Shown here one piece after another: positions 6,101-23,500 of a DNA stretch of 34,203 bases. The notes under the pieces were generated by a model. It did not search any database, was not told where the DNA came from, and saw only the letters and a list, made by a program, of their open reading frames with translations. This stretch comes from Lenisia limosa (lineage: Eukaryota > Protista > Breviatea), in contig LPNZ01010338.1 of the NCBI GenBank assembly GCA_001655205.1, positions 1-34,203 on the forward strand. The letters are read 5' to 3'. The position numbers and the translations under genes are program-made. How positions within the stretch are numbered: position 1 is the first letter of the stretch; each line of letters opens with the position of its first letter.

Positions 6101-7140
6101 GATAAGGAAAACTTGTCCCAAACACCCTCGAGACTCCCTCCCCCAACACACCAAACTTGGTAGTAGCCAGGGTCGTCAAAATAATTGAGAGGCATCTTCT
6201 GGGTAAGCATCTTGGTAGCCCCCTAGAGGCCGGTTAAAGAGAGTAAGCAAATTGGAAGAGGGAAACGGTGTTAGTCAGTGGTGCTAATTGCGATTCCTCT
6301 TATTCATGTTCCAAAATTATACAATTTCACCCTCTAACATAAGAAGACGAATGCTGTGAGCTATAGCCTTCGACTGAGTCAGGAACGCCATAACTGTAAT
6401 CCTAGATAGATTACACTGAACTTGCAGAGAAAAAAAGAGACAGGATCCCCCTAACATTGTCAAGGTTTACTGCCGCCTCAATGCGAAGTTCCGATGCTAA
6501 CAAGGGGGAAGCATCCTACAAATTAGACAGAAATAGACGTTAGAAGGGAAGAGGGTCAACCAAAGGTCTTTCGCTGACCCGTTTAGTGATGCGGAAGATG
6601 TTGTCGTTTCTGCGAGAAGAGGAGTTAACGAAGACATATTCAGAGGAAAATCCCTCATATTTCAAAGGTTCTTCAAATATATAGCCAAAGCACAGCTGGA
6701 AGAACCCCAGAAGAGCGAAAAGCCGACAGATTTCAATTGACATCGATTAGCTAATGATCGGCTAAACACTCTCTCTATCAAATATAGCTTTTATTCAATT
6801 ACTTAAACATCTCCCATCATAAAATTGTCACATATTTGCTTCGGAACAAAATTGTTATATATGAGGAATTTTCATAGGCGTGTCATGGCATTTTTGAACA
6901 AGTTAAAAAAACAACAAACACACTATTGCAACATGTGCAACATGATGAAAAATTGAAAAATTTGTATTGTAGTTTTATATAACCCCAAGGAGGGTTTGTG
7001 TGTGGTTTCTTTGGGACTCGGGGACTTCTGTTTCCTGGGTTGTATACCCCAGATATTGATTTAAGTTCCCGAATTCCCGATTCAAAAATCAATGCACAGT
7101 CAATGCATATAAAGAGACACAATATTATAACCAATGCCAT
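181..7140 (-). CDS. Large multi-exon secreted/surface protein with C-terminal Kelch repeats (3' end runs toward or off the window start)
   Basis: The first exon encodes a hydrophobic signal-peptide-like MALVIILCLFICIDCALIFESG (ORF 6883-7140). Phase-consistent splicing of exons 527-650, 383-444 and 181-263 gives ...AYIWSGY...YCDDLWTLDLD|SLVWAEVEVKGPSPPWRTHAS|TTIVGDRLYMYGGRKRS, a typical Kelch repeat. About 25 further short exons bounded by GT/AG lie between these; not all were phased. Confidence 0.75.
2865..2915. repeat. 23/24-bp tandem duplication spanning a splice donor
   Basis: gacataccccctggccaacaatt (2865-2887) is followed by gacatacccccttggccaaccatt (2888-2911). Each copy carries GTATGT on the minus strand. 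Confidence 0.85.
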
Positions 7141-7503
7141 CGAGAAACATTAAATAATAAGAATAAGAAAAACGGTGAAACGGTCTATTTTTTCACCTTC
7201 TTTGGTGAAGAATCTACATCGGTAAAAGGAGAGCAACTCGGTGATTTTGAATCTCAATAGTATTTGACGGGTATTTGACCAATCACATTCAAGGTTATTC
7301 TACATATTACAAGTAAATAAATACCCTCCCCAATACTCTAGACTTTCCAAGTGAAAGCTGCATTTCACAAACCTTGGGGTAATGCATGTCGCTTAAACAT
7401 GGACGCAATACTAGGTTGGCCCCACCCTCCTGGTGATGGTTAATGGTTCAGATTTTATTTGCTGTCATCTACAAAGAAAATAACAAGTTCTGTTACATCT
7501 TCC

Positions 7504-9314
7504 TCAAAATTCATAATATGTCATCCCTAGGCCATCTACCTCATATGCCAGAATCTGATCATTGTCTGAAAAAATCTCTGGAATTCAATAAATGTTCTGT
7601 GAATAAACCATAATCTAAGCCAAAGAAAACACATCTAACCTGGAGGCGCAATACAATTGTGGCTTGTTGAATGGGCAAGAGCTTGGTTGTCAACTTTTCG
7701 GCTAGATTGTTAGAAGACCAAGGAAAGGGAACTTTCGTGCTTTGGGTGTCACTGACTCGATCAAAATACGGCCCCCACTCACAATTGAAGCGAATTGGCG
7801 ATAGCATTTGCAGAGCAAATGATGTCAGGGATAGTTAATTTCCGGGTCAAATAAGCATCAACCTGGTTGCGTGATGAAAGGTCTATCTATTCGTAACTGA
7901 TATGTTTTTGGAGAGTCATGTGAGATCTGAATACCACCTCCTACATCCTTTGCTTCCAAGAACACCGGCATTCGATGATGGCACCATTGAAGGTGTTTTG
8001 CAGCCGCAGTGGTCAGAATCGTGTAGCAATTGGACTGGTCAACAAGGCCCGCCAGGAAGAGGAGGGGGGCCTTGGGTTTTGATGAAGGTGACACTGTTTG
8101 GTGAGTTTGAACCCTAAGCTAATCGTAATTGCTCATCGAATCCTGAATTGCCTTATCTCTAAGCTGATATGTTCAAACAAGACACATATATGATGTAATA
8201 CATATTACAAAAAGGAAAAAAAAAATTAAAAATTAAAAAAAAAATAAAAAAGAAATTGCAAACCGAGTGTTTCTGAAGACCGAATATCCCCTTTGGGGAG
8301 AGCAAATTTCGGAGGTCGACCAGCAGAAAGAAAGGTGTCATTAGGGTGGAACACGTAAGGCTCTTTGTTACTCCATTCGTAGAACCTTAGAAAAATTACC
8401 CAAAATGAGTCATTCTATTTCAGTACCAAACATTAGCTTTTTGGGACGATAGTAACAGTTAATGAAATCATACCCTTCAATTGGAACCACACATCGTCCG
8501 TCCAAAGATGTAAACAGAGTCCTGGATTATCATTATGCAACAAACCTGAAAAGAACATCACATTCATTTGATTACAACACAAACGATGTCAGCATTGCTC
8601 ACAAGACAAAAGCTTGAAAATTCAATTGTAATACTATTTCACAATTACACAACAGCAGGCTACACAACATGCACCAGGTTTTTGATTCAAAACTTCACCG
8701 CAAATCCCAGCCAACTTCAGCCCAGAAAGCTCTTCAATGCTTTCCACCCGGTTATTGATGGAGACGTGTTGCGAGTGAGGCTATGGAGTTAGCCGAGGGA
8801 ATGGTGGTGATACCACAAAAAAGTATTGAATATCTGTATTTCAAATGACAGCAGCGTACCAATTGGAGTCCCCAGGTTGAAAGGGAAAGCTCTCTTCCCG
8901 TTTCTACTCAGTAAATAAAATAACCATACAGAGTGGAGTCATACAGAAATCCAGAGGTGTATCTTGGACATAGGAAAAAACTGACTTGATGACATCACAT
9001 ACCCTTGTTGTCCTTGTTTGTTCGTCTGTTGTAAAGTTAAAGAAGAACAGACAACGATTATTTTCAACAATAAACAAGATGAATAATCGAGTGAAGCCAG
9101 ACTCCTCGCCAACCTATCCCAAACGATCAACGGGCTTTTAGTTGAAGGTTTGACATTGTAATTTGAAGCATACTTGATTTCCGTTGTATCCTTATAGAAT
9201 AAGCTTGAGAACACCCGATACACTATCAAAATCACATCCCTACCTTATTTTCTGGAACATTGCAGTAGTTCCGCAAGGCTGGAGCCGACATTGCTAGAAT
9301 TACCCGGCCACACA
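7504..9314 (-). CDS. HMCES: SRAP-domain (HMCES/YedK-family) abasic-site processing protein, multi-exon
   Basis: Phase-consistent splicing gives (M)CGRVILAMS...NYNVKPSTKSPLIVW...RELSLSTWGLQLPHSQHVSINNRVESIEELSGLKTLFTSLDGRCVVPIEGFYEWSNKEPYVF...LFLAGL...CYTILTTAAAKHLQWCHHRMPVFLEAKDVDAYL...FRKVDNQALAHSTSHNCIAPP. This contains the SRAP motifs CGR, YNxxP, WGL, INxRxE, RCxVPxxGFYEW, TILTT and HxRMP. The exact 3' end and first exon are uncertain. Confidence 0.92.
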
Positions 9315-10593
9315 CTACATCCGTGATAAAGGGTGCTAACGGCTATTTCAACCACCTTCCTAAATATAAAACAAAGTAAAATCACTTCATCCCCCCCCCC
9401 CCNNNNNNNNNNNNNNNNNNNNNNNNNNNNNNNNNNNNNNNNNNNNNNNNNNNNNNNNNNNNNNNNNNNNNNNNNNNNNNNNNNNNNNNNNNNNNNNNNN
9501 NNNNNNNNNNNNNNNTGTTTCGGTCCTTTGAAGTCTGACTGTATCAAATTGTAACTGGAGTGTCAAACGGTATGAATCAGTACAAAAAAAAATATCTCTT
9601 TGTTTCGAAAGGTTGCTAAGAAAATATCTGACAAAAAAAACAAATCTTTATAAAATCGACCAGATACTATAGTCAATGTGAAGCTCTGAAAAAGAGAATG
9701 GCACATTCCAAAAAGATAGAACAGAGTGAGGTGCTGGGGGAATACACTACTACATACTGCAAAGAAACACATGAAAGTTTAACAACATGGTAAATGGGTC
9801 CAGGAACCACCTTATAACCAAAATGCCGATGCTATGCTGGTCTCCAGGATTCTGGTAGTGCTGAGAGTGTGATAATGGGTGGGAATGATATGTGATGGGT
9901 GGGTGTGCCTTGGAGAGTGTGGCTTCTTGAGCTGCATGTACGCTTCTTGTACGCTTGTGCTGCTGCTAGTACTCTCTGGTACTCTGTAATTTTCGTGTGG
10001 TGTCTATACCCCGGACGGTCCCTGGTTATACTTCCTTTTCAGAAGGGCCCCAGTGCTTTCGAGATGTTCCGCTGTCAATAATAAGCCATTTTTCTAATAG
10101 CTGAACATCCCCAGGACCCTCCACCACTTCTTCCCACCTCCAAAAAGTCAGGTCCTTCATTGCAGGAACATTTCGGAGCATTTGGTCTAGTTTTTGCACT
10201 GACATATATATATCTAAGGACGGGATCCCAAGCCCCTTTTTTTATTATCAGCCGTAGCCGAAGTGTATTCTTTTGACTTTTGGGCTAACTGAATAAGTGT
10301 TGTTGCATTTATCAGATACTTCCAACCACTCCAGAAGTCTTCTACTCAAATAGAATGATGACAATTGAGTTCCACTGTCACATCGGTATCCTTGGTGTTT
10401 TGTAGCGTGTTTCTCTTTCCCTCTGTTTCTTTGCTGTTTTTCTTCTTTTTTTTTTTCATGTTATGATTCTGTACATATATATATACTATATGATATGGTC
10501 TTTTTCTCACTTTTCAAAGAAACATTATGTATACACAAAAAAAAACAACCCATATTCAGCAAAATACCCCCCTAAAGACACATCTCCACAACC

Positions 10594-13500
10594 CTAAATT
10601 GCATGGAGCTCCTTTCCATAGTCATTTGAACTTGACTTCTTCTTCATCAGCATAGCCCCCGCTCCTCCAACAACAACCACTCCTGCAATGTGTAAAAGAT
10701 GTCCTAGCGTAGCAAAAACGTTCAAATGATGATCACCCCTCCCCTTACCAGCAACACCCGCAGCAATGATGCCAACAGGCATTCCGGAGTCGTCAGAGGT
10801 ATCAGCCTCTTCGGGGTCAGCGTTACCACCCTAAAAGATTAAGATATGGGGCACAGAGCAATGGGAAGAATGTCAGCCTCATATTAGGTGGTAGGTGCGA
10901 GTTTCATTAATTATGAAGTCCAGTGAACAGAAATGTATACACTCCGCAGTATAAGATATGTACAATGTCCAACTATCTTCATCATCGACAAACCTCGGAA
11001 GACCCCTGGTTGTCAGGCTTTGTAGGTTCTGTACCAGGATCGCCGTTATTGGAGTCGAAGTAGACTGGCGTTCTGTGGGATGATTACACACGCGAATGAT
11101 AACATCAAAACCAGATCTTCAACCATCCTGTAGATAGTGTGGACGGCTTAGGTCAGATATCCTTGTTTTTTTTTTACAAATAACCCCAGTCCTTTGTCAT
11201 CATTAAACAGAAGGCAGTCCATCAAAAGCGCTTACGATTCAAGTGACCATGACTCTTTGTTGTCGATGGAAATGCGGATGTTGTAAGTGGTTTTGTCGTC
11301 AACCTAAGGCGGTCATACTTGAAAAGAGAGACAAAGAATTATGAACCATATGGCGAATGAAAAAGTACCCACCTCGTCAGGAACCTTGCAGCCGACTATT
11401 AAGGTCTCAACAATCACGGTAGACTCCATAATGACATCAGAAGACCCGGCTTTTTCAAACTTGTTGAGTCAGAGGTATTAATAGGCTATCTAGAACACCA
11501 ATCAACCCAAACCCAAACAGCGGTCAGTGCCAACCTTGCAAAACACCCTGTCGACAATGACGTCATGAAGAGGAGATACTGGGATTTGGAGCCATTCCGA
11601 GTCAGGCAGGGCAATCTGAAAAAAAAGGGGGGGTAAGAAAAGAACGCTATAACCTTCCATAAATAAAAGAACAACTATCAACTCTATTGACTCTTTCATT
11701 CAGAAAAGTTTAACAGCTGTATCATCTCTCAAGCGCAATTCTTCGTATGCTATTCTCCTTACCTGCGGTCTAACTCTGAGAAGAGTTGGCTCACTATAGC
11801 GATACACCTAGGGTGATCAGACAGATGTAGATCCTTTCTAGATATTTATGCGATATGGTTCCATTCAAATGTGTATATCAGCTCTCCAAACTTCTCCCTT
11901 ACTCAGCCAATTAGCCAAAATCTCAGCATTCCACCCTACCGGCATGGGTTTACCAGGACGATAAGAAACATATCCTAAGGACACGTCTAACTTGAAGAAA
12001 CCAAGTCCGTCAATCAACTCCGTGCATGTCACCTGTTGGAGTGAGACGTTTTAAATCAGGAATTGCAGCAGTCCGCTGTTACATAATACAGTCGAAGTTT
12101 GAGGATTGTGATCATTAATTCGGGATTCAACAATATTATTCCCCTCCTACGGTAGAAGAGTCAACCTTGACAGCGTTGATCTTTGATCCAGCGAAACGGC
12201 ACACCATTCCTTTAAAGGGTAACATTTGGTGTATCAATAAAGTGTAGACGGCGGCGCTAATCAGATCAGTTCAGTACGTCGTCCCCCACTAACCATCGAC
12301 AGCAGTACCTTCCTTGAGATTGAAGGTGACGGTGAAGGAGCTTTCTTCCTCACTCCACTTGTACTACAAAGAAGATGTCGAATGATTGAACAACTTCAGC
12401 AAATCCAGTTTAATGATGTAAGTAATCTGTTCACAAAATACTTACTTTGTCAAGAGAAAAGTAAAATAAAAACAACTTAAAAAGTCATTTCAATTTCCAC
12501 ACCCCTCTCACGAATTTTGGTGAATAGTCGAGGATCTCGGGGTAGAAATCAGTGTAACACGTTCCCTCAAGACCAGGCTGATTACATGTCTCTGAAGGCG
12601 TATCACAACGCTCATTGCAGCAATAGCCGTCCGTGCTAATTTGTTAAATCTGAAAACGGGTCACTTTTGATCACGCCGTATTTAACAACCTACCAAAAAC
12701 CGTAATAGCACTCTGAGTCATCCGTGCAGGCTGAGAACATGAGATGAACAAATGACACTGGTCAAATACATTCAAGTTACCCAATTACCTAATCCTCTTG
12801 GCTTAATAAACTCGCATTTCCCTTCTTTGGAGCAGTAGTACTTAGACGAAGTACCGCAATCAGAAGCCTGAGAGCAGACCTTATCCTATTGAAATTAGTG
12901 GTGAGGGTACTCTGTTTGAATCATCGGAAAATCGTAAGTCTGAAGAGTAAACCAAGAATAAAACTCATTTAAGTATGCNNNNNNNNNNNNNNNNNNNNNN
13001 NNNNNNNNNNNNNNNNNNNNNNNNNNNNNNNNNNNNNNNNNNNNNNNNNNNNNNNNNNNNNNNNNNNNNNNATCGCGGGTGAACATTGTGGCGCAAGATT
13101 GGCTCCATGGGCTGTAGCACATGTGAGTCTGGGCGTATTTGCCTCCTACAAGGTTGGTTGAAAAGGGCTACACGATTTAAATAGCGACATATCCCCATTG
13201 TTTACAAACTTATAATTGGGTCAAATGATTTCTGAAGAGAACACATTACAAAGAGCCCCTCACCAGAGCATCCAGTTCCGGGACACATAGATCCGAAGTT
13301 TCTATCGCAGAATCCGCTGCCATTACACACTCCTAAGCAATTAACAAATTAGTTGGGAATATGGTAGTATTTGGGGCTGTTCGAAGAAGACGGAATGTCT
13401 CGATAAATTCTCGATAAATATCACTATTATATCGGTCGTTCTGGAACCGGATGGAAGCCCTAGTATTATAGTATATACAGTATTAATGCATTAGGGTTTG

Positions 13501-16500
13501 GGATCTGCTGGTGGTTGATAATCTCTTAAAATGTTGAAACTCTGGATGAAACATTAATTTCCAAACTTGTGACACCAACATCAAATAAAAAAAATACCAA
13601 CCATATCAACCCCGCCCATTCACCAGTAGGTTTACAGTCTCCAGATTCTGCAGTGCAATCGTCGTTGTAATCTTGACCACTATATAGGGGTTAAAAGAAT
13701 TTAGCTGTGAATAAAAAGGTGGACTTGAATCATGGCTCCAGGTTATAGATGATCATTTTCACTCATAGAATAAGAGTTCCTACAATTGTCCCTAACTAAG
13801 GCTCGCCTACAATGGTACAGGAGCACAATAGCCGAAATGACCAGGAACATTGCATGCCTTACAGGTTCCACACCTGAGACAGTAAGGTAATCATACTTAC
13901 AGCACCATTTTAGTATAGCACCTTCCTACCCATCTCTTTGACAGCATTTCCCATTAGAGCATCGGTCGGAGTAACACTCATCAGCATTAGTACAATCTTC
14001 TCCTATCAAGTCAGATATATACATACATATGTAGATAAAATAATAACTCACAATATCACAAGAAAAGGTCCAATTATTACTGAAAATTCACTGGTTCAAC
14101 CTACCCAGTTCCTTGGCTTTTGTGCATTGGCGGTTAACACATTTGTATCCCTTGATGCACTGGCTGTCTCTGAGGTGGTTAGATATATATTTCCGGTATG
14201 AAGACAGACTGCAAATATACAGTATTCCTACTTCCAGCATTGGGTCCAGCAAATACTGTCACAGCGATAACCTAAACCAGTTATAAGCTACAATGGTTTT
14301 GGGGAAGTAGTTGTATTTCTATAGGACACCACCGATAAATATCGATATTTATCCGTTTTGGTTTGTATAAGATCTAGTCGTCATCTTACCTTTGCAATGC
14401 TTCATGAATTCACCAGGGAGACATTCACCGTTCTTGCAGACAGCACCTGATATTTCCTTCACAAGTTAGTTGTGTTGATATCATTATTTTATACATATGA
14501 TATATACACAGAAGATCTTTCAAAAGACTTAAAAAATTCACATTCGTTCAAAACGGTACATAGGTTGGTTAGTCACCACAGCTCAATACATTTACGACAA
14601 AAAAGACAACCCACGGTCTCATGATCGGCCGAACAGGCGACACCACGACATGGCTCTCCATCCTTCATAATCTCACAACCTCCCTGAATAGTTAAACTGT
14701 AATATCGTTCATTGGGATCTCTCAAAACTACAAAGAATGGCTGTAGTCTTTTTGAAGTCAAAAACTACCCCAATTACCTTCCCGTCGCAATTTCCAGTTC
14801 TTCCACAGGAGAAAGGTCCTTGAACCTAAGGGATAAGCACGGGATATTCAGCAACATTTACTGGCAGGTACATACACAATGACAACTCTTCAACCTCAAT
14901 TCTGATATCTCAGCCGGCTAAGCCGCCCACCTTGCAGAACCCCCTGCTTTCAACACCCGAAGGTGTCAAGCTACATTTGCCCTTCACTGTCGCTACAAGG
15001 TCAGGGAATTGATCGCATATTGATGACAGTGCAAATCAAACACGTGTTCAGTTTTGAGTGAGAGAAAATGTAGTTCTTTAAAAATATGAATTACATAAGG
15101 ATAGTAAATCAATGAATGAAGAAAACCCTCCTCACCAGCACAAGAGTAGCAGCCAGTGTCACAGCGCTCTTCACAGCAGACTCCTTGAGAGCAAAACCCT
15201 CTGAATTGGTGAGTATTGGTTTATTCGATCAGGATTCGGAAGATTCTCGGGATATGGAGAGTCACAGTATTAAAATATTCGAGTGTTGCATACGAGGAGC
15301 ACTCAGAGCCGGAGTTACAGATATGGGCATTGGGGAGTTTGCTGCCATTAGCTGAAGGGTGAAGGACACTTCTCAGACTGTAAGAAGGAATAGGAGTATT
15401 ATTGCCCCAAAATATAATAAAGTACAACAGAACGTTGTTTCTGCCCCTCTTACGTACACATAAGGGCATATCAATACTCCACTTGCTGTCAATCTAAAGA
15501 ATAAAACTCAAACATAAAGAAAATAGATAACAGGTGCTATGGAAAATTTCATAATATTGTTGCTAAATCATCCAATTATTTACCTAACAAATTCGTTAAC
15601 AGCCTATAAGTTTCAGCAACACAATACTAGTAAAAGCCAAGCAAACATGGCAGTATAAGCGACTGGCATCAAAGGAAGTCCAATAGCCAGAATCGCACCT
15701 GAACAAATCAGTTAGAACTGATATAATAAGAAAAATCACATGTTTTTTGGTGAAACGTGCGTGGGATTACATGTTTGATTTTTTTTTTTTTTAATAACCC
15801 TTCCCACGTGATATCGCAGTGACTGCCGATTTCTGGTCCGTTGAAGCAGTGACCGTACCAAGACATGTTATCGCCTTTTTTCAGGTCCGGGCAATTGGCG
15901 TCTGGATTGTCAAATATAATTTATAATAAGAAGAATATTGAATACTTCAGATATGGTGAATTATACAAATAAATACCACTAATCCTCCCAGGGCTTCTTT
16001 GTCTCTGATAATTTTCTTTCGAATTTACAATTAAATGCCACCCACATTGCTTGCTTTTGGTCTGAGAAGGAAGGAAGTTACCACAAAGGCGACTCTCAAC
16101 TTCAGCTGTATCCGTGTGCATCACCATTCGAACGTACCCACGACCGCCTGGTGAGTTAGTAAAAAATGAAAGTGGAGGAGCGGGGTATTAACACCAAATA
16201 GAGAGTTGTGAAATACAGGTTATATCTGACATTCAATTCCAATACCCAATCTTAGAACCATCCCTTCATGATAATATAAAATTGTCAAACTTCCTGAATG
16301 TATATAATCCCCGATTTAATAAAATTTCACAGTAGCTTCTCTCCACCCCACCTGTTTTGGAATCATAGTAGTAATGGCCTTGGGTCTTTGGTCCATATGA
16401 ATTGGCAACAATCCAGTATTCTTCCTGTGCAAAGTAAAGGAATGTTTGAATGCCATGAGCACTGGAGTTTAATGGTATTCACGAATAACATATTCTCACA

Positions 16501-19500
16501 AACTATCAGTCAATTTTATGTGTCAAACAATTCGTAAAATTGTTAGAACCACATATTTTTGGAGTATTCATACAAATCAATTCAAAATTGTGATCGCTCT
16601 ACCTCCCCCCCCCCCCAANNNNNNNNNNNNNNNNNNNNNNNNNNNNNNNNNNNNNNNNNNNNGATGAAAATGGCATGATTGGAAATAACAGCTTCAACCC
16701 TTGACACACAAGCTCAACGGGCTTATTTGCAGATCTCTCAGATCTCATACCGAAAAATCTATTACATTTTTCCTCCAAAAGCAACAAAGCAAGTGTTGTT
16801 TAAACTACTTTTTAGGGGTGATCTACAAAATTCCCGGGTCTATGGACCTAAATTGGCGAGAGAACCAAAATAGACAGAGTTATTATCATTCTTCTTTGGA
16901 CTCACGATTCGGACAACATGGTTACTTGAGGCTGGTTCGGAATCAGCAGGTTTGTAGTACAATTCTAAACGGTCAAACGAATGAATATGTTGAAATAGAA
17001 GAACTCGTGTGCAATAATGATGATTTCATGCACACCTAACCTTCGGTTGCATCTCTCCAGGATTGTCGAGGGTACATGTATCCTGTAATGCTGCCACCGT
17101 TCATAATTTGCTCCTAACCAGTGAGTTGCATTTTGCAATCACAACATATATTTGGGAGGGATCCACCAATGTTCTTTTAGGTATACATTCGCAAACCTTC
17201 ATCAAGATTGGACCAGGCTCATTGATCCACCACACACCTTCATCAGACACACAAACGACAGGATCTATAGCGAGATGTTATCAGAAAAGACTATTCTGAG
17301 GAAACAGAAGAAGCTTTCGAGAATTATAAATATTGTTGTTACTTGTTTAAGAAAACAAAAAAGGTGCACAGATGAACCATTAAAAACAGTAAACTTCAAA
17401 CCGATTTTTTCAGGTTCGCAGGGAAGCGGAGGATCAGGATTCGGAAGATTCTCGGGATATGACTGAAGAGGTGGATGAGAGTGTTATATATATTATATGT
17501 AATAGTATGTGTTTATGTAATATTGATATCGATATGTGTTTATTGACTTACATTTTTTTTTGTGAGTGAGATCAGTAATGGCACTAAGTTTTTTATAACT
17601 TTTCGCAATTTTGAGTGAAAAAAACGGAATTTTGCACAAACAGTTTTACATTTTAGATTATTTACAATTCAGTTTGTTTTTCCAAATTGGGCAAGTTTAT
17701 CTTAAAAAAAACCTAAAACGGCTAAATTTGATGATTTTCCACAATTTCTAACTGCACGTTTAACGATATCGTTATTTTTACGAAACACTTCCTGATATTC
17801 ATGAGCATTTTTATGTTATAAGTCCTGAAAGTAGTTTGAGACTGTATCTTGAACATTTTATGAACTATTTGGGACGTAATAGTAGATAAAAAAGATGGGG
17901 TTTCATGAAAGGTGAAATTAGCAGTTTAGCATGTGCCAATTAAATCAATGTTTCAACAGGATCGACCTAAAGCACACGGCAAAAGCAAGTTCCGTGTATT
18001 TTATATCGATGCCACTTTTCATTAAGTTTTTTATAACTTTTCGCTTTTTAATTACGTATTCTAACTGTTTAGATGTGTAAATGATATATTTTTGACAATG
18101 CCAATGGATTGGCCTGCACAAAGTCCAGATTTGAACATTGAGCATGCATGATATCTACTTGACACACAATTGAACGAATCTGGTGTCACACCAACCTCCG
18201 AAGCTGATATGACGGAAAAATTGGAAGATGCTTGGTCTAAGATACCTTCAACTGCAATTAAAGACCTAATCGACTCCATGCCACGTCGTTGCCAGGCCAT
18301 TATCAACTCAAAATGATGCCCCACCAATATTAGGTTTTTTGGAATGTGTACTGCCTATTTTACATTATTTTCAAATATACATTTTATTTATTTTGGCCAG
18401 AGGTTAAATAACCTGTCTATTATTACATTTGATAGTGCAAAATGCCGTTTTTTTTCTCAAAATGAATAAAATTACCAAACGTTATCAAAAAAACTACTTA
18501 GTGCCATTACTTATCTCACGCANNNNNNNNNNNNNNNNNNNNNNNNNNNNNNNNNNNNNNNNNNNNNNNNNNNNNNNNNNNNNNNNNNNNNNNNNNNNNN
18601 NNNNNNNNNNNNNNNNNNNNNNNNNNNNNNNNNNNNNNNNNNNNNNNNNNNNNNNNNNNNNNNNNNNNNNNNNNNNNNNNNNNNNNNNNNNNNNNNNNNN
18701 NNNNNNNNNNNNNNNNNNNNNNNNNNNNNNNNNNNNNNNNNNNNNNNNNNNNCTGCAATAATGAGAATATAAAACTCAATACATCTATTTGGCAGATAGA
18801 AAAACGAAATAAAGCGTGAGTAAACTCGGCCCACCAAGGTAGTCCGAAACATCTGATGTGCCACCTTCCTCGCACGGATTGACTTCTTGACCACATGACA
18901 CCAATTGCTGGAGGGAGGTGGGGTGATGGAAAGGAGGAAAGTAATGCATGTGCATACTCCAACAGAACTAAGAATTGCCTTTGGTGAGTGATAATAACTA
19001 GTTCGCGCTGCAATACGTACCTGGACTGACAAAGCTTTTCCGCAGAGGCCTTCCAACAAACATATACGGTCAGAGAGCACACCAGTCACTGGGGGGGGGG
19101 GGGNNNNNNNNNNNNNNNNNNNNNNNNNNNNNNNNNNNNNNNNNNNNNNNNNNNNNNNNNNNNNNNNNNNNNNNNNNNNNNNNNNNNNNNNNNNNNNNNN
19201 NNNNNNNNNNNNNNNNNNNNNAAAAAAAAAATGGATGTTGCCAACATGCATGGATATAGCAAGACGAGCAATACGACTGATCTGACATCCTCATCAGCTT
19301 GCTGGCACTAAGAGATAAAAACTGCTATTTGTGTGCTGGTTTAGATGATAGATAACCAAAAATAAGGGGGGGGGGGGGTANNNNNNNNNNNNNNNNNNNN
19401 NNNNNNNNNNNNNNNNNNNNNNNNNNNNNTCTTGTAAAACCTTTGGTATACTATATTGTTTTTACTTAGCCTACTCTGGCATATATATCTCAGGGAAGTT

Positions 19501-19720
19501 GAATCTTCTCTTGACATCGTAGCCCCAGACTGGATTGATGAGGCATGAACTGGGTGCAGAAATGAGCAATATATTTTTAATTCGACTTTCACAGTCGGTT
19601 GATTGGCGATGATTCATATGGAATTCGGACAGATATTTGTATTGTGAGATTTTCCAATCATCAACTTAACAAACCGGAGATAAGCAAAAGCGACAGGACC
19701 AAGATGAAAGGAACCTTCAT
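10594..19720 (-). CDS. Type-I membrane papain-family (C1A) cysteine protease with Sushi-like, Cys-rich and IPT/TIG-like ectodomain modules (more than 30 exons)
   Basis: Signal peptide MKVPFILVLSLLLIS (ATG at 19720). Protease motifs: SDQSYCSSCYIHA (Cys codon 19259-19261), VLSDRIC, LSVQQLVSC...CEEGG, KEQIMNGGSI, NHVVRI (His 16918-16920), YWIVANSYG (Asn 16401-16403), GGRGYVRM. Then CPDL...CDITCDSGYW...W, repeated C..GxCCxxxC..C.xC modules, YPEILDYSP/CRFAG/YSEPTLLRVRP IPT-like segments, TM helix VGIIAAGVAGVVVVGGAGAMLM and tail KKKSSSNDYGKELHAI-stop (10594). Most junctions are phase-consistent; at least two exons fall in N-gaps. Confidence 0.88.
15227..15256. repeat. 30-bp exact copy of 17432-17461 (an exon of the same gene) lying in an intron
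   Basis: gatcaggattcggaagattctcgggatatg occurs identically at 15227-15256 and 17432-17461. Confidence 0.9.
17566..18519 (+). mobile_element. Degenerate, internally deleted Tc1/mariner-superfamily DNA transposon (about 950 bp) in an intron of the protease gene
   Basis: Terminal inverted repeats: gtgagatcagtaatggcactaagt (17566-17589) vs acttagtgccattacttatctcac (18496-18519), 1 mismatch in 24, with gapped similarity continuing to ...aaaacgg(a/c)attttgcac (17637 / 18435). A transposase remnant lies inside. No clean TA target-site duplication is visible and the right flank is a gap. Confidence 0.88.
17948..18333 (+). pseudogene. Tc1-like DD34E transposase C-terminal remnant (stops and frameshifts)
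   Basis: Reads MFQQD/[fs]DLKHTAK ... MDWPAQSPDLNIEHA*YLLDTQL...EKLEDAWSKIPSTAIKDLIDSMPRRCQAIINSK*CPT. This matches the Tc1-family motifs FQQDNxPKH, WPxQSPDLNPIExxW and SMPRRxxAVIxxKG. Confidence 0.92.
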
Positions 19721-20577
19721 TTTCAACTCCGCCTGATATGTGAAACACTTGAGAGACTTCAATTTGAACATATTCATATCAATCGAAAAATGAAAAATAT
19801 TACATGTGTAGTGTAAATAAATTTTAAACTCAAAATAACAACCCAAGATTCAAATATCAGACCCTAAGGAAGGTGATAAAAAAAGCGGATAAATCTATTG
19901 CAAAGACTCGCCGATCTCAGAGAATGTCAAGAAACAACGCCTCAAAAACGTCTATTTCAAAGTTATTTGATAATTTCCCTGGTCAAAGATGAGGAATATC
20001 CAAGAACACCCCAGTTTTGCTATAAGGCGGAAGGATGCATTCCGCCTCCGACAACCCGAAGGTATGTCAACAGCTTCAAACATTTCGCTTTCTTTCATTA
20101 ACTCACTTTATATTTTTTTATATTAATACCTACCGGTGGAAAGGTCAGAACGAATAACCGCGAAGTAGGACCGTCTTTTTCTTCAACTGCAGTTGCTTTC
20201 TCCCGTTCTAACCAGCTTAACAGACTGATAAATAGACAAATAAATGAATAATAGACAAATACGACACAATTCACACACAATCCACACACCCCGACCTGGC
20301 TCCTTTTCGGCTCAACCGCGGTCAGTCATAGCTTGGACCGGGGAAATTAAAGCTGCCCCTGCACCACCCCATGACTAAATCATATAAATTACGAAATTAA
20401 ACTCCCTTTAAAGCACAACCAAAAAATGCGAAAAACTCCAAAACACCGTTTCTAACCTTTGGTACTCTACTAAGTAACAATATTAATAGCGAAATTGAGT
20501 CATTTGAAAAGGTTCTTGCTATTTTCGTTTTATCCGGTTGTTCTAAAGAGCGATAGTCACCTTCTAAGGGACTAAAT
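19721..20577. promoter_or_regulatory. Divergent intergenic region (putative bidirectional promoter) between the protease and GNAT genes
   Basis: Inferred only from head-to-head start codons at 19720 (-) and 20578 (+). There is a GC-richer patch near 20285-20375; no specific motif is assigned. Confidence 0.35.
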
Positions 20578-23500
20578 ATGACAGAACCAGTTAACATAGT
20601 GAATGCGCCGCAGGAAGCTGTGGTTGCTGTTGTAGGGGTGTCAGAACCAGTTGGAGGGTCTGAGATTACCAGCGCTGATGTTCCGACCTCTCACAGTATT
20701 CCTGATGTAGTCACTCTCCCAATCCAAAGTGCCATCAATGTTGCGGATGCTGAAACCTTGGTGGGGAGAGAGTGTCTTAACTTTCCTCATTTGCCCAAAA
20801 TTTTGAAATACTTGTTGTTTTGTTTTTATATATAATTATATGATATATATTTTTTTTTTTTTATTAATATTTTTTTTTTTTTTGACATACGCANNNNNNN
20901 NNNNNNNNNNNNNNNNNNNNNNNNNNNNNNNNNNNNNNNNNNNNNNNNNNNNNNNNNNNNNNNNNNNNNNNNNNNNNNNNNNNNNNNNNNNNNNNNNNNN
21001 GTTTTGTTTTTTTGTACCCGTTAAGATATAAATTCAATGGTGATATTCTTGCCTATGTTCTGTTCAACAGATATTCTTCCATTGACCTTGCGATAAAACA
21101 GCTCTCATGTTGAAGGTTGCATCCAGCGTGCAGCCAGATGACGTGGACCCTCTGACTGCATCTAGTATGGGGCTTGTCGTTGGATATTCATGTCATCTTC
21201 AAGGGTTAATTGTTATGCAGTTCAATTATTCTTGCGTATTATTTTTGATAGTGATTTCACCCTGCTCATTACCAATTCATTTACCCCCCCCCCCCNNNNN
21301 NNNNNNNNNNNNNNNNNNNNNNNNNNNNNNNNNNNNNNNNNNNNNNNNNNNNNNNNNNNNNNNNNNNNNNNNNNNNNNNNNNNNNNNNNNNNNNNNNNNN
21401 NNNNNNNNNNNNNNNNNNNNNNNNNNNNNNNNNNNNNNNNNNNNNNNNNNNNNNNNNNNNNNNNNNNNNNNNNNNGGCGCAAAGTTGGCAATAATCAAAA
21501 TCATTTTTGCTTTCCACAAAACAACCCTTGTTAAAAACGCCAACAATCAATTGGAACTCTGTAGTTTGTATGATAACTATCGGAGTTTAGTTTTCTCACT
21601 ACCAATCATGTTTCTATCGTCACTCTTCAGCGCAAAAGGAGAACAACTGAGGTCGACCCGACTCCCCCAATTGAGTCCACTGTCGAGGTACCTGGGAAGT
21701 TTTGCATTCGAAACGACAAGATTTGTTGGACTATGCTTGAATATAACGCCCTTTTCTTTTTATCAATCAAATAAGTTCCGCAGATGGGCGGGGGGCGTAA
21801 TCAATATTTGCCCAGTTTCAGTAATCAGATATGATATTGAGTTCCCTAGGTTGACCGGCCTGTTCGAAGAGGACGGAAGCCTGGAAAGAAGAACAACACT
21901 GCTGCCGTTATTGGTGGGATGGCTTTGTTATGCAGATCTGTTGACTACATGGAAATATTATCAAAAGAGATCTTGAGCGCTATTCAGTGAAATTCTTTTC
22001 ACATCCCCAGAAACCAACCCAAAGTATTCATACATGCTCGACAATCAAAATCTCCTCGAGAGGCCGACTCCTGCGCCTCCTGTATGTGAACTTCCGGCCA
22101 TCCAGGTTTGGTGAAGCAATTTGACTCTATTTCTGTTCTTTTATAATCACGTTGGATTTTGGTCTGTTTTTTTATATTCTAAAAATTTTACCCCCCCCCC
22201 CCATTNNNNNNNNNNNNNNNNNNNNNNNNNNNNNNNNNNNNNNNNNNNNNNNNNNNNNNNNNNNNNNNNNNNNNNNNNNTGTGGCGAAAGTCATCGGAGG
22301 CGGTGTTGTCAACGCCAACTCCCTCCTCAAGGCCAGGTTCGTTTACTATGTCCCTTCTCTATAAATTCTCGATAACATGTTTTATCTCTCATTCTCTGAT
22401 AAAAAAAAACTCAGTCTTATAAAAATAGGGATCTTTTGATACAGAACACCAAGGTTCCGAACCTCTCTCCTGCTCTCCTCCAGACTTTTGGCTTGGCGGG
22501 GTTCTCCTCACAACAGGTTTGATTGAAATGATGCCCAGTAATCATGTTCCTACTCCACCCTAAATATTGACATATTGGAAAACTGTAAGTACCTTCCCTT
22601 ACGCCCTCCCCCAGGTTATGCAGCTTCAACAGCAGCAGTTCTTCTTGCAGTACCGTGACCAGCAGCTTCAGATCCAAAAGGCACAAGCAGAGGAAAACGC
22701 CATTACCGGGACCCAAAGCAGTAACCCGGATCCTGCCACCCAGGAGACTTTCGAGCTTGGTGGGCTGGGTCTCGCATTTGTCGAATTCAGTCTTAATTCG
22801 AGGCTGATACCCTCCTCGATTTGAGCAGTGCTGTGAGAATGGAATTAACTATTGGTCCCATACATACAGTATAACCCCTTTATGAACACTTTGATAATAT
22901 TGCTGAAATAAACATTACTTAATAGACACATTGTGAAGCATGCTCACAACCTTGATGATTCCTTAATAGACACATTGTGAACCATGCTTACAACCTTGAT
23001 GATACCTTAATAGACACATTGTGAACCATACTACCTTGATGATTCTTTAATTCAAACATTTTGTTCTACAGCACGTTAGCTTACTTTATCATGACACTCT
23101 TCACCTTCCAGCCAAGGTATTTGGAGAAGGCAAGGTTACCGATGAGGCTCTGACGAAAGCTAAGGATTACATGGCCGCTGCGAAGAATGCTGAAACTGCC
23201 CTTCTTAATTCAGAGGGTGTGAGGATATAGTACACTCACATAAATCATGCGCACTTATGATTCCTCTAATATGTACATATAATGATATAATGTACAATAT
23301 ATACGTTGTACATATATGTATCATATATGATGAAGATATAATCGATGTTCACATTTTTTCAAAGCTATACTTTGCTGTCACCCCCTCCCCCATACACACA
23401 CCCAATCCAGATAATTTCTCGTTTGAATTGGTTTATCTTATAGTTGTTATACAATTGTACAATAGCGCCAATATTAGACTATTCCAAGTTATTTCAGCAT

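Follow-up and report, generated by a model that had tools for sequence, protein, structure and literature searches.

Contig LPNZ01010338.1 of the breviate protist Lenisia limosa, analyzed here over its full 34,203 nucleotides (the window), carries a minus-strand locus that we lean toward reading as a single intron-rich gene for a type I membrane protein. Its head would be a papain-like (C1A) cysteine protease domain that is catalytically complete and lacks a propeptide, carried on a stalk and held by a C-terminal transmembrane (TM) helix; we infer that the enzyme is active and displayed on the cell surface. An initial annotation of this DNA had proposed a membrane-anchored papain-like protease on a mosaic adhesion-type stalk. 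Its observations on the sequence were largely right: the protease domain and the Cys-rich repeats are borne out by profile statistics, and the Sushi and IPT/TIG modules by consensus patterns only.

Gene model

The window has a G+C content of ~38% and numerous N gaps, and reads as eukaryotic DNA. The region of interest is spanned by no long open reading frame (ORF); coding sequence occurs as short open pieces on the minus strand whose protein motifs are consistently ordered. We enumerated GT..AG introns between motif anchors, chained exons by codon log-odds and splice-site scores, and curated the result by hand (Table 1). All 38 exons, 37–124 nt in length, join in a single open frame with zero frameshifts or in-frame stops required, and the frame is lost upon retention of 35 of the 37 introns. 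The introns measure 32–1570 nt, with the majority falling between 56 and 170 nt. Exon scoring was trained on the 10594–19720 locus itself and so is not independent evidence by itself. Exon-like signals are dense over 10.6–19.7 kb and also recur at untrained places elsewhere in the window. The same scoring finds no minus-strand exon-like signals in 19721–23500 or 7000–10593, and the locus therefore stands as one isolated minus-strand exon cluster. An automatic re-trained exon chain was dropped because it lost true protease exons to micro-exons.

The smallest intron (17114–17145, between exons 6 and 7) is a 32-nt GT-AG intron required to align ..SQIY/EQIMNGG.. (exon junction at the slash) with a conserved helix of the papain fold, and it coexists with introns of 0.5–1.6 kb in one gene.

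A papain-like catalytic head

To build a C1 profile, a prokaryotic genome collection was scanned for the DNA pattern of QGxCGSCWAF, which returned 120 loci, and 104 proteins were used in a local hidden Markov model (HMM). All seven fetched ORFs that we examined match Pfam Peptidase_C1 (PF00112; E 1e-33 to 1e-53). Against the local HMM, the joined model reaches 38.7 bits (single-sequence E 4e-14), compared with ≤4.7 bits for every one of 200 shuffled sequences, and the alignment is collinear over res. 43–225. The oxyanion residue Gln52 and the catalytic residues Cys58, His189, and Asn201 all fall in columns invariant across 104/104 comparators, where the CGSCW columns are fixed by the search pattern used to collect them. 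The raw, unjoined ORF pieces also match the profile in collinear order, which makes the C1A homology independent of the splicing model. These data bear out the N-terminal C1A domain of the initial annotation together with its oxyanion Gln and catalytic Cys, His, and Asn. As judged from its sequence, the head is most likely a divergent but catalytically complete papain-family domain without an inhibitory propeptide.

Exon-level searches were run with Pfam on 20 stop-to-stop ORF pieces, the exons encoding 20–41 residues each. Because the exons are very short, exon-by-exon searches of Pfam, NCBIfam, PDB, and the ESM Atlas for domains came back empty. Single exons gave no Pfam C1A match, the pieces being too short, and phmmer searches of PDB sequences with exons 4, 6, and 31 returned nothing, even at E up to 10.

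Two features of cathepsin B were considered. In that enzyme, an occluding loop of ~20 residues, which contains a His-His pair, is placed after the CNGG region and before the central sheet. The model has no such loop, lacks His-His in this region, and is ~10 residues shorter at this point than a generic prokaryotic C1A domain, with the caveat that the assembly gap in intron 5 falls here. The sequence ..LSDRIC.. (19060–19086) is present and contains SDRIC, a motif that in cathepsin B follows the active-site helix and that we take to be a marker of that enzyme; the comparison set had no eukaryotic cathepsin B.

The stalk and membrane anchor

The protease is followed by a Sushi/CCP-like module, the final part of which occupies a small exon of its own (15454–15493). 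The exon 10/exon 11 junction that connects the two lies on a gap-free stretch and is phase-compatible. Its 144-nt intron (16045–15902) contains no ATG, which excludes a separate gene start between the protease and the Sushi-like module.

Next in the stalk comes a Cys-rich region, with 60 Cys in res. 252–645. It is built from a repeat unit of ~85 residues, present in at least three copies, with the consensus G.aC....eC.sGfC.dG.CC...C...C..C...G..GtC. Exon 28 (41 residues), used as a phmmer query against 1.84 billion representative proteins, retrieved 27 matches at E ≤1e-3 (best E 2.8e-22), some of which carry up to 35 repeat copies per protein. All 27 align only to model res. 316–645, with one alignment reaching res. 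688; neither the protease nor the IPT-like part is matched by any of them. Scored with a profile built from 159 repeat copies, the model reaches 122.9 bits and shows clear units at res. 321–405, 474–559, and 597–641. Single units are spread across up to four consecutive exons, in profile order, and residue-level alignments give ~50% identity per half-unit to the repeat relatives. No Pfam or NCBIfam model matched the repeat, the NCBIfam run covering four exons. The several Cys-rich repeats noticed initially are thus upheld by both the search and the profile.

The repeat relatives that we examined are all bacterial, and their partner domains are FG-GAP, SBBP, PPC, or OmpA. They include one protein from a Candidatus Binatia metagenome-assembled genome (MAG), one encoded by a single 9.3-kb MAG ORF, and one with bacterial gene neighbors. 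In one bacterial relative (P0008, 747 aa), the last Cys-rich repeat gives way, within res. 615–747, to a linker rich in Pro and Thr, then to a hydrophobic helix and an Arg-rich terminus. The C-terminal end of the window protein shows the same succession of a repeat, a linker, an anchor, and a basic tail.

Downstream of the repeats, two candidate modules of the Ig-type IPT-like class precede an acidic linker and the TM helix. IPT-like module 1 begins in exon 28, which also encodes a Cys-rich half-unit; exon 32 carries parts of both IPT-like modules, and exon 36 spans module 2 and the linker. Since these exons and exon 37 each carry parts of two modules, the Cys-rich region, IPT-like modules, linker, and TM helix are tied together.

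The model contains two hydrophobic stretches only (res. 1–26 and 862–889). Acidic residues precede the TM helix on the outside and KKK follows it on the inside. The protein thus combines an N-terminal signal peptide, one C-terminal TM helix, and a basic cytoplasmic side, as in a type I single-pass protein. The helix is divided between exons 37 and 38 by an intron with the splice sites GTAAGG...TTGCAG, and the 16-residue cytoplasmic tail reads KKKSSSNDYGKELHAI, followed by the stop codon. Hydropathy and sequence agree with the single TM helix and 16-residue tail first described for this locus, and the membrane-anchored topology, with the protease N-terminal on a Cys-rich stalk, is supported at the sequence level as type I. 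The intron inside the helix (intron 37, 10683–10748, 66 nt) is in frame and stop-free; its retention would place 22 extra residues, including RGD, in mid-helix.

Table 1 Features of the minus-strand locus and its assembly gaps.
Feature	Coordinates	Strand	Basis or remark
Whole gene model	10594..19720	-	38 exons, 37 GT-AG introns, 904 codons + stop
Start codon ATG	19720	-	
Stop codon TAG	10596-10594	-	
Exon 1	19671..19720	-	Start codon and signal-peptide-like MKVPFILVLSLLLISG; read from sequence; strongest hydrophobic stretch of the model
C1A catalytic domain, exons 2-10, model res. ~17-252	16046..19549	-	Local Peptidase_C1 profile
Oxyanion Gln52 (codon 19277-19279) and catalytic Cys58 (codon 19259-19261)	19259..19279	-	Within ..DQSYCSSCY..
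Catalytic His189 codon	16918..16920	-	..SSNHVVRI..; His in 104/104 comparators
Catalytic Asn201 codon	16401..16403	-	..YWIVANSYG..; Asn in 104/104 comparators
Sushi/CCP-like module, exons 11-13, model res. 255-312	15454..15901	-	Pattern C-P..G...C..GY...C...W...P.C read from sequence
Cys-rich repeat region, exons 14-28, model res. 321-641	12551..15351	-	phmmer and repeat profile
IPT/TIG-like module 1, model res. 644-733, from inside exon 28 to exon 32	11793..12544	-	Consensus only (P.I...SP ... C.F.G....A..V....V.C ... Y.Y)
IPT/TIG-like module 2, model res. 735-827, exons 32-36	11057..11789	-	Consensus only
Acidic Pro/Thr/Ser-rich linker (res. 828-866), TM helix (res. 865-888), 16-residue tail	10597..11056	-	Hydropathy
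Gap in intron 2	19381..19429		Exon 2/3 phases compatible; N-terminal to profile coverage
Gap in intron 3	19104..19221		Exon 3/4 join indel-free in C1 profile alignment
Gap in intron 5 (1570 nt)	18523..18752		Adjoins repeat element
Gap in intron 8 (481 nt), between His exon and Asn exon	16619..16662		Join 7 hairpin residues short versus profile
Gap in intron 25	12979..13071		Sole link between the contig of exons 9-25 and the contig of exons 26-38

Continuity of the locus

Several observations weigh against the reading of one gene for an active, anchored protease, and they concern the continuity of the locus, the activity of the head, and the identity of the stalk modules. The spliced model was derived from genomic DNA alone, and its protease half and TM half are joined only by a scaffold statement across the gap in intron 25. 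On one side, exons 9–25 lie in the gap-free stretch 13072–16618 and run from the Asn exon through the C-terminal end of the protease and the Sushi-like module into Cys-rich units; on the other, below 12978, exons 26–38 encode the final Cys-rich unit, the two IPT-like modules, and the TM helix. Read-through of the exon-25 donor hits a stop after 15 codons, which makes a secreted product possible. With five gaps in the locus, the model could be an artifact, in which a secreted protease-Sushi-repeat gene and a separate repeat-IPT-TM gene were merged across this gap, or a decaying copy whose defects are hidden in gaps. Opposed to this is the agreement between the flanking exons, which are phase-compatible (0/0), lie on the same strand, and belong to the same repeat family. 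In addition, the 93 readable bases before exon 26 provide no usable start, as their lone ATG opens a 15-codon ORF with GT sites in the wrong phase, and none of the 38 exons needs a frameshift or an in-frame stop. We regard the artifact as rather unlikely. An ORF at 13145 that runs into the same gap (EANTPRLTCATAH...) was rejected as an additional exon: its acceptor is good, but it does not match the repeat profile.

All five gaps lie inside modelled introns, and two of them may hide coding sequence. At the gap in intron 3, no coding residues are lost, since the exon 3/4 join aligns without an indel. The exon 5/6 join is phase-compatible and the model is only ~10 residues shorter than the C1 profile there; an acceptor-like ttattgcag stands at the upper edge of the intron 5 gap, and a hidden exon would not be required by the sequence. 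This gap probably reflects a repeat element, because its lower edge adjoins an inverted-repeat arm. The deficit at the exon 8/9 join reflects either a genuine reduction of the hairpin or a micro-exon concealed in the gap of intron 8. As filler for the shortened hairpin, we considered FKQHLLCCFWRKN (~16768–16806) and discarded it, given a poor acceptor and the absence of G-x-G.

Homopolymer tracts flank three of the five gaps (C12 at 19092–19103 and T10 at 19222–19231 around the gap in intron 3, C14 at 19367–19380 beside that in intron 2, and G12 at 16607–16618 beside that in intron 8), and such tracts therefore appear to break the assembly; no homopolymer flank occurs at the gaps in introns 5 and 25.

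Activity of the head

The second group of adverse observations bears on catalysis. The residues beside the catalytic positions depart from consensus, with CSSCY for CGSCW, HV for HA, and NSY for NSW; V follows His in 4/104 comparators and Y occurs in 3/104. The hairpin between His and Asn is ~7 residues short relative to the profile. Most conspicuously, the profile match begins only ~26 residues after the signal peptide, and no typical eukaryotic propeptide of the I29 or cathepsin B type is found. The C1A propeptide normally assists folding and inhibits the enzyme, and its absence casts doubt on protease activity. There is no place for the usual 60–100 residues, because, besides the short distance available, intron 1 (121 nt) is gap-free and nothing exon-like lies upstream of the ATG; the gap in intron 2 qualifies this conclusion.

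The head might accordingly be a binding module or a very weak enzyme, in practice a pseudo-protease, and the protein an adhesion or recognition receptor comparable to tubulointerstitial nephritis antigen (TINAG). The missing propeptide, the substitutions, the shortened hairpin, and the placement of the domain on an adhesion-type stalk all fit such a receptor. Against it speak the four catalytic and oxyanion residues, all kept in invariant columns, and the usual loss of Cys in known pseudo-proteases of the C1A family. We find a pseudo-protease quite improbable and retain the active, catalytically complete head as the preferred reading.

Three of the seven examined prokaryotic proteins, encoded on MAG contigs (L086:3877-5157, L078:309-1850, and L074:3411-5981), carry a chagasin-type inhibitor domain (Pfam Inhibitor_I42) N-terminal to Peptidase_C1, where it occupies the place of the eukaryotic propeptide.

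Identity of the stalk modules and cellular location

The third group concerns the stalk. Exon-bearing ORF pieces give no Pfam match to Sushi (PF00084), so that this module of the initial annotation stands on its consensus pattern. The same applies to the two IPT/TIG-like domains: the consensus pattern is present in both, yet exon-level Pfam and PDB searches for IPT/TIG (PF01833) are empty, an ESM Atlas search with exon 31 gave no usable match, and the similarity between the two modules is not significant, its score being reached by 51/1000 shuffles. Finally, none of the 27 repeat matches, which were obtained with a stalk exon as the only query, is near-identical to the model or shares its architecture. 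Since no near-identical match was found, the gene product or a transcript-derived copy is apparently absent from the 1.84-billion collection.

The topology of the protein is compatible with a surface or an intracellular location. The same gene could thus encode a hydrolase tethered to the membrane of lysosomes or phagosomes, or a precursor from whose stalk the head is cut in an acidic compartment, as C1A enzymes are typically endolysosomal and type I proteins with short tails often go to endosomes. Yet the 16-residue tail, as read from its sequence, has no clear YxxPhi or [DE]xxxL[LI] sorting motif, and a disulfide-rich stalk of this kind, ~580 residues long and containing Sushi-like and Ig-like modules, is more often seen in surface proteins. 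An intracellular destination appears unlikely to us, and surface display is the location we favor. The roles first suggested for the protein, in prey capture, shedding, or self/non-self recognition, are conceivable.

Comparison with known proteins

Protease heads on modular, disulfide-rich stalks, whose membrane tether serves local cleavage or shedding, are familiar from ADAMs, meprins, and type II TM serine proteases. These belong to other catalytic classes and folds and are zymogens with prodomains, and their heads are not homologous to the one described here. TINAG and TINAGL1 combine a cathepsin-B-like domain with Cys-rich extracellular modules in an adhesion-type protein. TINAG has its Cys-rich modules at the N-terminus, is secreted, and has lost the catalytic Cys, whereas the window protein begins with the protease, retains the Cys, and carries a TM anchor. 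A resemblance to Dictyostelium Tgr, drawn in the initial annotation, depends on IPT/TIG domains that have a consensus-pattern basis only here.

Among the prokaryotic proteins, multidomain C1A enzymes (for example, L090:327-3071 and L007:190-3051) resemble the window protein in having Peptidase_C1 near the ORF start, followed by Ig-like or other surface modules, over 800–950 residues. They differ in being intron-less and in ending in type IX secretion system (T9SS) tails or dockerins rather than a type I anchor. When a long bacterial C1A protein served as query in a word search, the matches were confined to close relatives of the Zixibacteria type, with T9SS tails, dockerins, and fn3 as partners and no TIG; because only close relatives were returned, this result says nothing about eukaryotes. 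None of the proteins compared here pairs the protease with the Cys-rich repeat of the stalk, although that repeat, too, has bacterial surface proteins as its nearest relatives among those examined.

The closest anchored enzymes come from an amoeboid protist. The EhCP-B family of Entamoeba histolytica comprises papain-like peptidases with a C-terminal TM helix, glycosylphosphatidylinositol (GPI) signal, or hydrophobic end; they are cathepsin-L-like pre-pro enzymes with propeptides of ~105 residues, mostly 300–474 residues long (one of 650), and their C-terminal extensions are short (PMC1913524). The window protein shares with them the C1A domain, the signal peptide, and the predicted C-terminal membrane anchor. 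It is not of the EhCP-B type, given that it lacks a propeptide and inserts ~580 residues of other modules between enzyme and anchor. In Apicomplexa, cryptopain-1 and the falcipains are C1A enzymes predicted or known to be membrane-bound in a type II orientation, through an N-terminal TM segment in a long prodomain (PMC10454693). In contrast to the window protein, they have no C-terminal stalk.

In the literature, we found only these Entamoeba and apicomplexan membrane-bound enzymes, and no description of a C1A head on a Sushi/Cys-rich/Ig-like stalk with a type I anchor. The initial statement that the architecture matched no characterized protein is therefore weakened by the anchored EhCP-B family and, within the literature searched, stands for the full mosaic. 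Membrane-anchored papain-like enzymes were already known as predictions, from Entamoeba; the novelty here lies in the long mosaic stalk and the lack of a propeptide.

Proposed mechanism and significance

In the model we propose, the protein would be a type I membrane glycoprotein whose signal peptide is cleaved, leaving the C1A head at the membrane-distal end of a ~580-residue stalk. From the head to the membrane, the stalk would start with the Sushi-like module, continue with three or more Cys-rich repeats of bacterial type and two IPT-like Ig-like modules, and end in the acidic linker, followed by the TM helix and the 16-residue tail. The protease, presumably active, may be exposed at the plasma membrane and on the phagocytic membranes that arise from it, where it could cleave proteins of bound particles or prey, or neighboring surface proteins. 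The disulfide-rich stalk would be a spacer and may double as a binding arm. By analogy, the principle would resemble that of ADAMs, meprins, and the Entamoeba protease-adhesin complex.

If real, this would be a eukaryotic papain-family protease without the propeptide that folds and silences such enzymes, tethered through a long adhesion-type stalk. It raises the questions of how the enzyme folds and stays in check, and of whether free-living protists use tethered cysteine proteases as animals use ADAMs and meprins. A bacterial origin of the repeat, if correct, would provide a clean case in which an intron-rich mosaic gene of a eukaryote has recruited an extracellular module from bacteria.

A broader and doubtful, though conceivable, extension is that exon shuffling in this organism places a common stalk cassette (Sushi-like, bacterial-type Cys-rich, Ig-like, and TM) under varied catalytic heads, here a propeptide-independent papain-type one. 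Were this so, the Cys-rich repeats may have been acquired from bacteria, with introns inserted later, and the cassette would offer a new way to regulate C1A enzymes and deploy them on the cell surface, such as in contact-dependent prey digestion or recognition.

Repeats and neighboring genes

Intron 5 contains an element of ~960 bp (17563–18522) that looks like a small transposable element. It is bounded by 32-nt inverted repeats (17563–17594 and 18491–18522, 88% complementary), the upper arm of which adjoins the gap in this intron, and includes an inner 30-nt direct repeat (17582–17611 and 18020–18049) as well as an open piece of 97 codons for which Pfam gave no match. A candidate exon, 'SEVGV...' (18097–18203), was rejected on account of its position within this inverted-repeat-flanked element.

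A different 30-nt sequence, probably a dispersed repeat, occurs in two identical copies (15227–15256 and 17432–17461), located in different introns of the gene. Translated on the gene strand, it gives ..YPENLPNPD.. and misled the automatic exon chain; it forms the core of the candidate exon 'SYPENLPNPD...' (17402–17462), which was rejected in view of the identical copy.

Further exon-like clusters indicate neighboring genes in the window, at ~0–4 kb and 28–31 kb on the minus strand and at 20–27 kb on the plus strand.

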